DNA from: Bugula neritina
Lineage: Eukaryota > Animalia > Bryozoa
Direction: 5' to 3'
Length of the DNA: 64,000 nucleotides
Assembly (NCBI GenBank): GCA_964035545.1
Contig: OZ037768.1
Location: 21,187,700-21,251,699 of the forward strand
Made by a program: the position numbers and the translations under genes. The stretch's first letter is position 1. Each line of letters opens with the position of its first letter. The notes under the pieces were generated by a model that searched no databases, was not told the origin of the DNA, and worked only from the letters and a program-made list of their open reading frames with translations. This document shows, one piece after another, positions 22,609-28,600 of this stretch.

Positions 22609-25600
22609 ATGGCTGATAGCGGAGTCAGCAGACCAGATGAAGGTTCCAAATAGAATAATAAGCTTATTCTAATAGAGTCGATGGAAATAAAATTTTGAAC
22701 ATTCATGGCCTTAACTAATTTATAAAATTTTAGGATTAGAAAAAATAATATCTTTTATGTTTTGAACAAAAATTATTGATGTAATTGTTGGAATTTTATT
22801 TTTAAATTATTCATTAAGATTATTGACTACTTATAATAAAACTATAAAATAGATAATATTTGTAAGATGACAGTTCATCAGTACATGCACAGTTGATACA
22901 CAGAGCAAGATTGTAGACTAGTATCTAGAAAGATTGGTGGTTAGAATTAGTTTTCAGCTTTTTTGTTCTTTGTTAAAGTTTGTAGCAGTTCATCCTTTAT
23001 ATTTTGTAGGCTTTTACAGACTCTGGTTTGGATGTGATGATGCGAGTTTCCGAAAGAACTGGAGAGGGGAAGTAACAGCAGAATACACCATTCAAATATA
23101 TACCATTCAAAGAATAAAGCAGAATCCTGAAGCCAGAACTGCAACACACCTCATCCTATTTGAACAAATCCCACCAGACATCCATCTTCTCTTTCCACAA
23201 GTCACTCATCTCAATATTAAATGGCCTCAACTATTTTCCCAACAAAAGTGAGACTTCAATCAGAATATAACAAAATCCTAAAGTACTTTACTAATTGGTA
23301 GATGGCAACAAGAAAAAATGAAAAAGCTTATAACTGTTTTCTAAATTTAGATCCTGGCTTTTTGACATGTGTACATTACACAGCATTTTTATCTATGAGC
23401 AGCTCATGAGTTGACAGTATAAAAACATATAAATATATATATATATATATATTAGAAGAAATAAAATGAGATTTGATTAATATAATGGCATTTATTACTA
23501 GTAGTTTCGTACACAAGAACGATGTGCACTCGTCAGATAAATTAGCCACATCGTTCTTGTGTACGAAACTACTAGTAATAAATGCCATTATATTAATCAA
23601 ATCTCATTTTATTTCTTCTAATGTTTACGCTCTAGATTTATTTCTATAGAGCACTCTAGTAACGTTTTATAAACACTCATTTTACTATATATATATATAT
23701 ATATATATATATATATATATATATATATATATATATATATATATATATATATATATATATATATATATATATATATATATATATATATATATATATATAT
23801 ATACCGCGTAACTTGAATACATTGCACCTGACTTGACTGTGTGTTTTACTATGCAATTTGCAAACTTTGTAGCTTTGTGTCCACTCTGTCTACTTTATGT
23901 TCATTATATATAGTATGATGATAATAATTCTGCTTTTCACATCCTCTCCTTTGAGATGTAAACCCTCGCACTCACCATTTAATATGATGTTCAAATCTCA
24001 GATTATTAAGGGTAGGTAATTGTTTCCAAATGGACTAAACTTGTACTAATATATATTTATTGTTACAGCATCAGCAAGTTGACTAATCTGAAGGTATTAC
24101 ATATGAGTAACGATAACTTTTTTACTGGTCTACCTGACATCGTCAGTTCTCTACTCTCTTTGGAGGAGTTGAAGTTGACAGACTGTGGACTACAAACTCT
24201 CCCCATCAGGTAAAACATACTTTATATCTCCTGTGTTATATGCTAATATGTTATACTTGAAGAAATCCTAGCTTAGCTTCGATGTCTCATTTTTCATATT
24301 TAATAAAAGTGGGTATCTGTTAAATAATATACAATTCTATAAACTATCTAAATCAACATCATAACCTGCTGCATAATTTTTCACCCTAAAAACACATTAA
24401 CAGGCTTTCTCTAGGTGTTTCTGCTCATATTATTCGCATTCAATAATTCAAAGTAGTAAAATTACCAGAGTTAAATATAGAGTTTTACAAACCAAAATAA
24501 GCTTCCTATAATATGTAATAATTCTAGAAAGACAGTCATTTATATTTATACATGATGAAAAACATTACATTATAGGCTTTTACTCCCCACTGATAAATTA
24601 CCCTTTTAAAGTTAAACTTTTCTGTAAACATATATAGCATAGTTTCTTATCCCTGAATTATTGAATCCCATGTATTCAACTAAACTCATTAACACATTTT
24701 ATCTAACATATATGCATATGCATTCTATTTTCTATATAACTAAAAGCAGTTTTGAGTTGTTTCAGTGCTCTGTAAACTGAACATTCTAAATGCTGTTGCA
24801 CTAATTCTTGCATTTTGTTAATTTTGTTAATGGTGTAAACTTTTTCTTGTAAAATATTTTTTGAAGTAATCAGTTGTTATATGACATATCTTTAAAGCCA
24901 TTATCAAGAATTATTTACCCGTTCAAACTAAAATATACTTATACTGTTATATTTTATTGTTACATGCAGCATCAGCCAGTTGACTAATCTGAAGGTATTA
25001 GATATAAGTAACAATCACTTTTATGCTGGTCTACCTGATATCTTCAGTTATCTACTCTCTCTGGAGAAGTTGGAATTGAGACACTGTAGACTAAAAACTG
25101 TCCCCAACAGGTAAAACACACTTTATATCTCCTGTGCTATATTGTTATACATGAATATAGTAACCCTGGCTTAGCTTTAATATCTCCATGCATTAGATAT
25201 TTAATATTTTTATATTTCCATATAGTTAATATTACACTGCAGTCTCTACCTGATTTTTTCTTAGTCTTATAATTTTTGTATCTATAACAATTTTGAGTTT
25301 TAGATTTTTTACCTGAACATGTTGCATTAAGTTTTTTTTTAGAACCAGTTGGTTTTGAATAAGTTGTTTACACTCATTTCAATTTTGTAACTTGAATACA
25401 TTGCACCTGACTTGACTCTATAATATTTTGCTATTCAATTTGTAAACTTTGTAGCTCTGTGTCTACTCTGTCTACTTTATGTTCATATTCCTTCTTCACA
25501 TTCTCTGTTTTGAGATGTAAAACCATAATTTGGCATCTAATATGATTTTCAAAACACGGGTTAGGGTAGTTAATTGTTTCCAAATGAACTAAACTTGTAC

Positions 25601-28600
25601 TATCATTTATTGTTACAGCATCAGCAAGTTGACTAATCTGAAGGTATTAGATATGAGTTACAATGACTGTTCTGCTAATCTATCTGACATCATCAGCTCT
25701 CTACTCTCTCTAGAGAAGTTGGGGTTGAGATACTGTGGACTACAAACTCTCCCAAAGAGGTAAAACATACTTTATAATATCTTATGTTCCATGTTACATG
25801 TAGTAATTCTGGCTTAGTTTTGATGTCTCATTTTAAGATTTCATTTTAAACAAGTAGCTATGTAGTAGACAATATATAATTCTATAAACTATTTAAAATA
25901 CATCGTACAACCTGCTGCATAATCCTTCACTCTAAAAACACATCAACAGGCTTCTTCTATATGTTGGTGTTTCTACTCATATAGTATTGGCATTCTATTC
26001 ATAGGAGTAAAACTAACAGAGTTGAAGAGTCTTATGAATCAAAAAAGATTCCTATATAGTAATTCCAGAAAGACAAACATTTATATTCATATTTATATAA
26101 CATGATGCAAACATTAAATTGGTTTTGTCTCCTTATATAAAGTAATAAAACACTCTTTCAAAGTTAATCATGTCGTTGATAACATTTTCTGTAAACATAT
26201 AGCATGTTTTTATCCCTGAATTATCCTATCACCATGTATTAAAAAATTCAATAGCAAATTTTATATAACATATAATTATATGCATGCATTTTATTTTCTA
26301 TAAAACCACAACTAGTTTTGAATTGTTTCAGTGTCTTGTAAACTCAACATTTTAAAGCTGTTGCGCTGAATTCTGCGTACAATGCTATTTTTTCTAGTCC
26401 AATAAAATTTTTCTTGTATAATGACTTTAACAGAATACAACCAGTTTTTATATGATACATCTTTAAAGCCATCATTAGGAATTAATAATTTGTTCAAACT
26501 AAAATAAACTTATAATAAGATAATTAATTGTTACAGCATCAGCCAGTTGACTAATCTGAAGGTATTAGATTTGAGTAAGAATGAATTTTCTGCTGGTCTA
26601 CCTGACATCTTCGGTTCTTTACTCTCTCTGGAGGAGTTGAAGTTGAAATACTGTGGACTACAAACTCTCCCTAAGGGGTAAATCAAACTTTATATCTCCT
26701 GTGCTATGCTATACATGTATATGCATGTATAGCATAGCACGGGAGATATAAAGATTATGCACAGGATAACTATAGTTATCCTGTGCATAATCTTTTACTC
26801 TAAACACATTACCAAGCTTTTTCTAAGTTTTTCACTGATATAAGTGTTGGCGTTCTACAATTTACAGTTGTAAAACTAACAGAGTTGAAAAGCTTTATAA
26901 ACTAAAACAAGCTTAGATTTATACGATAATTTGAGAAAGACATGCAGATGATAAATATTAACTACGTGTTTTTACCTATAGGTAATAAAATACTCGTTTA
27001 AAGTTAATTATATATGCTGTTTATGAAACTCTCTGTAAACATGCAGCATGTTTTTATACCTGATTTATTGAGTCACCATGTTAATCACCTGTTTCTTTTA
27101 TCCAACAAAAATTTGTTAACTAAATTTATCTCATAGCGTACATGCATGCATTCTATTTTATATAAAACCAAAAGTAGTTTTGAGTTGTTTCAGTGCTCTG
27201 TAAACTGAACATTCTAAATTCTGTTGCACTGAATCCTGCATTTTGTTAATTTTGCTAATGTTGTAAACTTTTTCTTGCAAAATATTTTTAAAATAACCAG
27301 TTTTTATATGATACATCTTTAAAGCCATCATTAGGAATTATAAGTAACTGGTTCAAAATAAATTATAGACTTGTACTGTTACCATTTATTCTTACAGCAT
27401 CAGCAAGTTGACTAATCTGAAGGTATTAGATATGAGTCACAATGACTTTTCTGCTGGTCTACCTGACATCTTCAGTTCTTTACTCTCTCTGGAGGAGTTG
27501 GAGTTGACACATTGTAAACTACAAACTCTCCCAAAGAGGTAAAACAAACTTTATACTTCCTATTGCTATGCTACATGTAATAATCTCTGCTTAGTCTCAC
27601 CATCCTAACTTGGTATTTTATTCTAATACAAGTTATATGCTTTGAAAGAATAAACAATAACATAAAGTATTCTATTTATTATTTAAAATTCATAGCTTTT
27701 CTTATATAATTAAACTTCAGAAACTTGGTTTGAGTTGGAAAGTTATATGGCACAAGTTTCTACTACTATATATACTAGAAAATTATTATATTTAATTATA
27801 TAGTATGAACTATAATGTCATGAAGTTTTTCAAAAATAAAAAAACAAAGTCGTAGCTTGGAAAATGCAGACTTGTAAAATAGAAAAAGACTATAGTCAAT
27901 TAGCAGTCAAATCAACTTTGTATTATATTAATTGGGAACCAAATAGTTCTGGTTTGGAATGTAGAATTGCTTCACATAAAATGCATAATATGCATTTTAT
28001 GTTAGATATAATATTATTATATTTAACATAAATTTTATGTAAAAATAACACTCTCAGCTTTTATTATTGGCAACATATTTTCTTGTTTCCATACGTATCA
28101 TTAGTTGGGAAGTTATCAGAAGAGAAAGTCTTATAAGCTGAACAAGGACTTGCTGTAAACATTTCTGATTTATGTGGCCGCGTATTGGTGTCATAGGTTC
28201 AGGAGAGCTGCTCTGTTAGCGTAGGGCCACATTAGACGTACTTTTGAGTGCCAATTCGCATGGTTGGGAATTCGAACAAGAGGAAGTGCGCCGCTTATAT
28301 AGCGGGAGCTAGTGTAGTGGAACACGCACTACCCGCGTTCACGTGTCCCCTAGCCAATTAGAGATGCGTCAGGTGACAACCCCCAGCAATGCGTAACGAG
28401 AGGGTTGTCAGTAGAGAGAGCGTACTAGCAATTAGGAAGATGTAATACTTTAATCCGTGTGCTTTCTTATATCATTTTATTAGTATGTAATTATAAATAA
28501 ATCTCTTTTAATCTTATCACAAGCCCTATATTGCTGCAGATAATCAAGTCATAATTACAAGCTAGGAACCACGCATTAGTATTGTGTAAATCACAACAGT

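Follow-up and report, generated by a model that had tools for sequence, protein, structure and literature searches.

Does a tandem array of leucine-rich repeat (LRR) exons in the genome of the bryozoan Bugula neritina form the diversifying arm of a receptor, and by what means is it diversified? The array consists of five exons within a stretch of 64,000 nt (assembly GCA_964035545.1, contig OZ037768.1, positions 21,187,700 to 21,251,699; hereafter the window), and is followed by exons encoding a Roc GTPase, a COR domain and a caspase. We propose, with a probability of about 0.72, that the five are germline cassette exons and make up the LRR arm of a gene in a large bryozoan LRR-Roc-COR-caspase family, that the array has been reshaped by crossover or conversion, and that its exposed sites have been diversified.

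Each of the five cassettes, termed E1 to E5 (Table 1), is exactly 141 bp long, has an acceptor ending in ACAG or GCAG and the donor GTAAA, and stands in the same phase: its first base completes a codon and its last two bases open the next. Because 141 nt amounts to 47 codons and the phase is identical, any one cassette can be added or removed without a frameshift. Pairwise nucleotide identity among the five is 84-90%, and a profile built from them matched only these five exons in the window, with E values of about 1e-46 to 1e-48. Each cassette encodes two LRRs, with the patterns LxxLxLxxNxF and LxxLxLxxCxL, and has a Pfam LRR match. Among 35 distinct copies in this genome, LTNLKVL (codons 4-10) and the LLSLE core are invariant or nearly so, and codons 4-8, 10, 36 and the Cys at 39 are constant. 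Intron segments are repeated together with the exons (repeat families D3-D15), mostly two units, or about 1550 nt, apart. The earlier note, made from the sequence of the window, had described five symmetric 141-bp exons of one phase with a near-invariant start and LLSLE core, and introns duplicated along with them. Coordinates, AG/GT sites, codon count, the 35 copies and the shared intron segments all agree with that description, and the variable peptides it quoted (HMSND/DISNN/DMSYN/DLSKN/DMSHN in the first repeat and KLTDCG/ELRHCR/GLRYCG/KLKYCG/ELTHCK in the second) are correct.

The gene has many relatives. Homologues of its Roc-COR exon occupy at least 64 places in the 216-Mb genome at E <= 1e-188, drawn from 156 first-look candidates. 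Its own subfamily comprises four genes, three in tandem on the window's contig (85% protein identity) and a fourth on a separate contig (70%), with 6, 6, 5 (the window gene) and about 26 cassettes. Together, the subfamily's two clusters hold 45 copies of the 141-nt cassette; 44 are open, and 40 of these 44 are flanked by AG and GT. In the paralogue with about 26 cassettes (C6, 12741776-12761597), the array has a 422-bp period and holds a 4962-bp higher-order duplicate with identical exons; this array has expanded very recently. Between two family genes (C4:21127828-21128761), with no Roc exon nearby, lie an orphan cassette exon, open and flanked by AG and GT, and a broken fragment. The recognition repertoire that had been proposed for the window fits the family of at least 64 genes, and not the window gene alone.

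Has the array itself changed? A GenBank assembly of B. neritina (GCA_010799875.2) contains a locus collinear with 23.7-55.7 kb of the window at 85-94% identity overall (93% in the large exon, 85-90% in introns); it is the orthologous locus of a diverged lineage, with four cassettes versus five in the window. Two of the four are identical to each other but for 6 nt, and one intron consists of intron-1-like sequence followed directly by intron-2-like sequence, the intervening exon being missing. In a tree of the exons with 60 nt of flank on either side, the cassettes of the three tandem genes cluster by position, indicating that the array predates the gene duplications and that its mode of evolution is birth and death, not homogenisation. 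When upstream and downstream flanks were classed separately, those of a single exon often fell into different homology classes. The upstream flank of E2 belongs with exon 2 of a paralogue termed B and its downstream flank with exon 4 of B. Paralogue B lacks a counterpart of E4, which is closest to an orphan exon and to exon 4 of a second paralogue, A. E5 is 4 mismatches away from exon 4 of paralogue B, and the flanks of the two are unrelated. The last cassette of the GenBank locus combines an E3-type upstream flank with a terminal-type downstream flank. These mismatched classes place crossover or conversion breakpoints in or at the exons. Cassette duplication, loss and exchange, as the earlier note had supposed, are therefore borne out: the flanks are recombinant, and exon number is fixed neither between the two assemblies nor among the paralogues.

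Based on these observations, we suggest that unequal crossing-over and exon-sized conversion, breaking in or at exons, would add, delete and recombine cassettes over evolutionary time, and that the reading frame would survive each gain or loss, every cassette being 141 nt long and in one phase. Separately, one DNA contig of sequencing run X15 jumps from 26318 (intron 3) back to 24751 (intron 1) at homologous repeat points, with one extra A. Such a jump would be expected from a haplotype carrying a duplication of E2-E3, or from a paralogue.

Could the cassettes also be combined differently within one animal, by regulated skipping in the manner of Dscam or by somatic rearrangement in the manner of lamprey VLRs? 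Their symmetry, their near-identical splice sites and exon starts, and the alternative LRR-exon isoforms of brown-alga ROCO genes (PMC11378527) would be in keeping with such use. In 40 cassettes, synonymous third positions vary by 2.7% in codons 4-10 and 17-27 versus 7.8% in codons 28-46 (p = 0.004), a threefold reduction in the first half that would fit splicing-control sequences; it is a constraint at the nucleotide level in the first LRR of each cassette, splicing enhancers being one possible cause. The transcript data came as Logan contigs of 30-100 nt, interrupted at the invariant exon starts; in the RNA-like runs, coverage falls on the exon bins and is scarce over the introns. In one RNA-like contig, a paralogue of the upstream exon is joined exactly to a cassette acceptor, and the cassette acceptor is therefore used. 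No joint between cassettes, skipped or not, was seen in the RNA-like contigs over 23810-28300, which are short and broken at exon starts, and the pattern of a spliced cassette-cassette junction had no match in JGI metagenome contigs or in the genome itself, the latter arguing that there is no retrocopy. The layout is also not that of VLR loci, where donor cassettes lacking splice sites flank an incomplete gene: the bryozoan cassettes are ordinary exons with AG and GT borders, in series inside a complete gene with open frames wherever examined. Moreover, positional homology across paralogues is expected if each cassette has a fixed place in the protein, and germline events fully explain the observed diversity. 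We consider combinatorial use unlikely. Exon skipping is only a possibility that the exon arithmetic allows, and constitutive splicing of the cassettes, one after another, is the most likely case. It is a little less probable again that regulated skipping or choice of cassettes yields many LRR-Roc-COR-caspase isoforms per colony or cell type and, with them, variable recognition of self and non-self or of pathogens with a built-in death protease.

The preferred reading of a germline-diversified LRR arm is further supported by the places at which the cassettes differ. A set of exposed codons was fixed beforehand from the LRR motif, comprising the x positions of xxLxLxx in both repeats and the residue after N/C (codons 8, 9, 11, 13, 14, 16, 32, 33, 35, 37, 38 and 40); the other 34 codons form the rest. 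The most variable residues among the 35 distinct copies are 14, 16, 35, 37, 38 and 40, and also 3 and 42. Under the GY94 codon model, the ratio of nonsynonymous to synonymous rates (omega, or dN/dS), obtained from IQ-TREE single-partition runs on a scaled fixed tree, is 2.5-3.2 for the exposed set (twice the log-likelihood difference from omega = 1, 11-21) and 0.63-0.70 for the other 34 codons; for the whole exon it is about 1.1-1.25. In 20 phylogenetically independent pairs, 84 of the 164 nonsynonymous changes (51%) fall in the 12 exposed codons, a concentration matched by 32 of 100000 random codon sets (permutation 3e-4). Counted dN/dS in the same pairs is 1.9 for the exposed codons (p = 0.014) and 0.75 for the rest. 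Between positional homologues, nonsynonymous divergence (pN) at exposed codons is 0.218 versus 0.103 for the flanking introns (Fisher 4e-6), 2.1 times faster. The Roc-COR exon has an omega of 0.25-0.37 against the orthologue and a paralogue, and across the three tandem genes and the orthologue, protein identity of the caspase p20 pieces is 90-99%; relative to the orthologue, Roc-COR and caspase are both under clear purifying selection.

The structural context was taken from a relative. MFHAS1-like proteins of the bryozoan Watersipora contain the same 47-aa unit, with variation at the same places. In the Watersipora genome each unit has its own block of about 141 nt, and a Peptidase_C14 gene follows immediately downstream. 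For six units, AlphaFold modelling of the database protein (P0044:96-376; mean predicted local distance difference test score 72.7) gave strands on xLxLx. The strands of an LRR solenoid line its concave face. The model places codons 11, 13, 35 and 37 in a strand and codons 14, 16, 38, 40 and 42 in the loop that follows it. The claim that variation sits on the ligand-face x positions of the repeats is supported: changes are concentrated there and not evenly spread, omega exceeds 1 and the rate is above that of the introns. It needs one refinement, as the first two x positions of each repeat (K8 V9 and E32 E33) are conserved. The hot codons (11, 13, 14, 16 and 35, 37, 38, 40, with 3 and 42) correspond to the C-terminal half of each strand and the following loop.

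An alternative is relaxed constraint, in which the family turns over by birth and death, the copy decays after transposon insertions and exposed LRR positions drift. The whole-exon omega close to 1, a pairwise ratio near 1 at exposed sites in some subsets, two long terminal repeat (LTR) elements inserted at the locus and the broken cassette fragment in its neighbourhood are all compatible with decay. However, nonsynonymous divergence at exposed sites is twice that of the introns, more than drift by itself can produce; the codon model rejects omega = 1 for these sites; and the examined frames are open, with Roc-COR and caspase under clear purifying selection against the orthologue. Relaxed constraint is thus an improbable explanation. 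That the selection signal is an artefact, created by conversion between cassettes and by mistaken homology among repeats, is very improbable. Recombination is known to yield false positives when codon models are tested, and conversion is evident here (E5 versus exon 4 of paralogue B, and the pair of exons differing by 6 nt at the orthologous locus). Conversion moves whole tracts, however, and does not produce concentration on positions fixed beforehand; in the Watersipora proteins, distant as they are, variation falls on these positions too.

What does the LRR arm belong to? Upstream, the exon at 23010-23247 ends in ..CAAAA before the donor gtgaga and joins E1 in frame. An exon with the start codon was not found by tblastx of 10-15 kb against the upstream region of the C6 paralogue, nor by comparison with Watersipora, whose N-termini had no match; the orthologous GenBank contig stops short of this region. 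Downstream, E5 joins the large exon in frame through a codon split as AG and T, encoding Ser. Searches were made exon by exon. The Roc domain scores 30.2 bits in Pfam (cut-off 27), and its translation has the P-loop, DxxG and N/TKxD motifs of a Ras-like GTPase, with THKD read directly. The COR-A match (E 0.0016, 18.8 bits) is below the curated cut-off of 35.3. The Roc-COR exon aligns over 98% of its length, with E values of 1e-127 to 1e-130, to Watersipora proteins carrying PF16095; it is 90% identical to part of a B. neritina protein, and its annotated relatives are Watersipora 'MFHAS1 homolog' proteins. Two further exons match Peptidase_C14 profile positions 1-49 and 49-130, each above the cut-off, and a p10-like piece matches positions 170-213 below it (E 0.02, 15 bits). 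The candidate catalytic His (SHG) and Cys (EVCSGG) are kept in 5 of 5 loci, namely the window gene, three paralogues and the orthologue. All examined reading frames of the window gene are open. The coupling of the LRR array to a caspase, which had been predicted, therefore stands for gene order and reading frames, with the layout LRR-Roc-COR-caspase.

In the account we favour, each cassette is a two-repeat unit with an invariant scaffold; diversifying selection retains substitutions at its exposed positions, and purifying selection maintains the Roc-COR switch and the caspase. The layout also suggests how the protein may work. The product may be a cytoplasmic one-chain sensor, in which a ligand bound on the LRR arc would alter the state or dimerisation of Roc-COR and the fused caspase would be activated by proximity. 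Its role could be recognition of non-self or damage, like that of NLRs acting through adaptors.

Several points weigh against this account. Each sequence behind the omega estimates is 138 nt long and their tree was made from 261 nt, and conversion among cassettes breaks the tree model and can inflate omega. Within clusters, pairwise Nei-Gojobori ratios at the exposed codons amount to only 1.05-1.7, and synonymous constraint in the first LRR raises omega there. In place of the pentapeptide QACxG, the window gene (45560-45630), the three paralogues and the orthologue have EVCSG. Because two retrotransposons are inserted in or beside the gene, this copy may be poorly expressed; no end-to-end transcript of it was seen, and its start-codon exon was not found. 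Finally, the sensor-switch-protease mechanism is one that we infer from domain order only.

Table 1. Features of the window discussed in the text, with positions counted from its first nucleotide.
Feature	Position	Strand	Evidence and remarks
GC-rich LTR retrotransposon	14996-22437	-	570 bp upstream of the 23010 exon; position in an intron or the 5' flank
Upstream coding exon, 238 nt, LRR-like cap, without start codon	23010-23247	+	tblastn, queried with the corresponding C6-paralogue exon; splice sites read
LRR cassette exon E1	24069-24209	+	47 aa, two LRRs; splice sites, profile search, Pfam LRR
Four inter-cassette introns (760, 508, 777 and 720 nt)	24210-27397	+	Segments duplicated along with the exons
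LRR cassette exon E2	24970-25110	+	Splice sites, profile search
LRR cassette exon E3	25619-25759	+	Splice sites, profile search
LRR cassette exon E4	26537-26677	+	Splice sites, profile search, flank and tree comparison
LRR cassette exon E5, final cassette	27398-27538	+	Splice sites, profile search, flanks, Pfam
Insertion block in the E5-Roc intron: GC-rich LTR retrotransposon, related partial copy, AT-rich low-complexity repeats	28312-40868		Repeats, domains, comparison with the orthologue
Large exon, 2072 nt: last LRRs, Roc GTPase, COR	41107-43178	+	Pfam, translation, homology
Caspase region, at least 3 coding pieces: p20 start (44812-45030), p20 with SHG and EVCSGG (45367-45630), p10-like (46428-46685)	44812-46685	+	Pfam, homology; splice sites approximate

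The window is AT-rich, with about 30% GC and two GC-rich islands. A bacterial or contaminant origin of the islands was considered and rejected, as they are LTR retrotransposons with reverse transcriptase, RNase H and integrase. Both elements are of the Ty3/gypsy type, with 51-59% GC in a genome of 30% GC and LTR pairs 96-97% alike. The intronic one has its LTRs at 28304-28529 and 35568-35793 within an element region of 28304-37700. The insertion block that contains it is absent from the orthologous GenBank locus and accounts for the 13.5-kb length of the E5-Roc intron. The upstream element, which has an open pol frame of 1037 aa, is missing from paralogues A and B at the corresponding point. 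Two other repeats were observed in the window. A perfect hairpin (23500-23585) with the look of a miniature inverted-repeat transposable element lies beside a (TA)n tract of about 120 nt (23686-23803), and recurs in inverted orientation at the GenBank locus (L048 3142-3541), as well as upstream of paralogue A. At 53022-53921, a 25-nt unit is repeated in tandem in about 36 copies, most of them 96-97% alike.

The closest parallel in exon design comes from brown algae. In the ROCO genes of Ectocarpus and Saccharina, one LRR is encoded per 72-bp phase-2 exon, the exons are shuffled, orphan exons are found, four concave sites are positively selected and alternative LRR isoforms exist (PMC3341825, PMC11378527). 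The precedent of LRR exon shuffling that the earlier note gave for Ectocarpus is thereby confirmed. Clustered LRR-Roc-COR genes, tandem symmetric phase-2 LRR exons of one fixed length, variation in exon number and order, orphan exons and positive selection on concave-face positions all recur in the bryozoan, and the algal genes are proposed immune receptors (Zambounis et al. 2012; Teng et al. 2024). The two differ in the unit, which is one LRR per 72 bp in the algae and two LRRs per 141 bp in the bryozoan, in the absence of a caspase from the algal genes and in the isoforms, documented in the algae only. The bryozoan host being an animal, the exon design is very probably convergent. What is new relative to the algae is the two-repeat 141-nt unit, the animal host and the fused caspase; the logic is the same.

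In domain order, the bryozoan gene resembles MFHAS1/MASL1, with LRR, Roc and COR in succession, and NCBI names the nearest Watersipora and Lingula relatives 'MFHAS1 homolog'. Vertebrate MFHAS1 is a single gene and is not known to have a caspase or an array of cassette exons, whereas the bryozoan family has at least 64 members and a fused caspase. Roc-COR is combined with cell-death modules in other invertebrates too: Trichoplax has ROCO proteins with death-fold domains, either CARD or death (Civiero et al. 2014, PMC4104024), and the MFHAS1-like relative in Lingula (P0052) carries a CARD. These are adaptor domains that would recruit a caspase, whereas the bryozoan protease is encoded in the same gene.

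Among immune receptors, NLRs, including those of plants, share the scheme of LRR sensor, nucleotide switch and death effector, tandem clusters and diversifying selection on xxLxLxx. Their switch is, however, a STAND ATPase of the NACHT or NB-ARC type and their effector is recruited, whereas the bryozoan switch is a Roc-COR GTPase with the effector fused; the central modules are not homologous. Lamprey VLRs and arthropod Dscam also draw receptor variety from LRR cassettes or from arrayed copies of symmetric exons, respectively. In VLRs this occurs by somatic gene conversion into an incomplete germline gene and in Dscam by mutually exclusive splicing. The layout of the bryozoan locus is not that of VLRs. 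In the literature on animal ROCO-caspase proteins or on Bugula, we found no paper on the bryozoan LRR-Roc-COR-caspase family, and PMC8195603 and PMC2858798 do not mention it.

For the cassettes, comparison of genome sequences supports both germline shuffling and diversifying selection. The window locus provides direct evidence of a change in cassette number within about 10% neutral divergence, with breakpoints in exons. Variable innate recognition in animals is generally attributed to NLRs, TLRs and a small number of lineage-specific systems. The bryozoan, a lophotrochozoan, has built a large family on a different switch, the LRRK2-type Roc-COR GTPase, with a recognition arm of shuffling exons and a caspase that is fused and not recruited. 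It would be a third, independent solution to linking sensor, switch and executioner, and would offer a natural system in which the output of Roc-COR can be read as protease activity.

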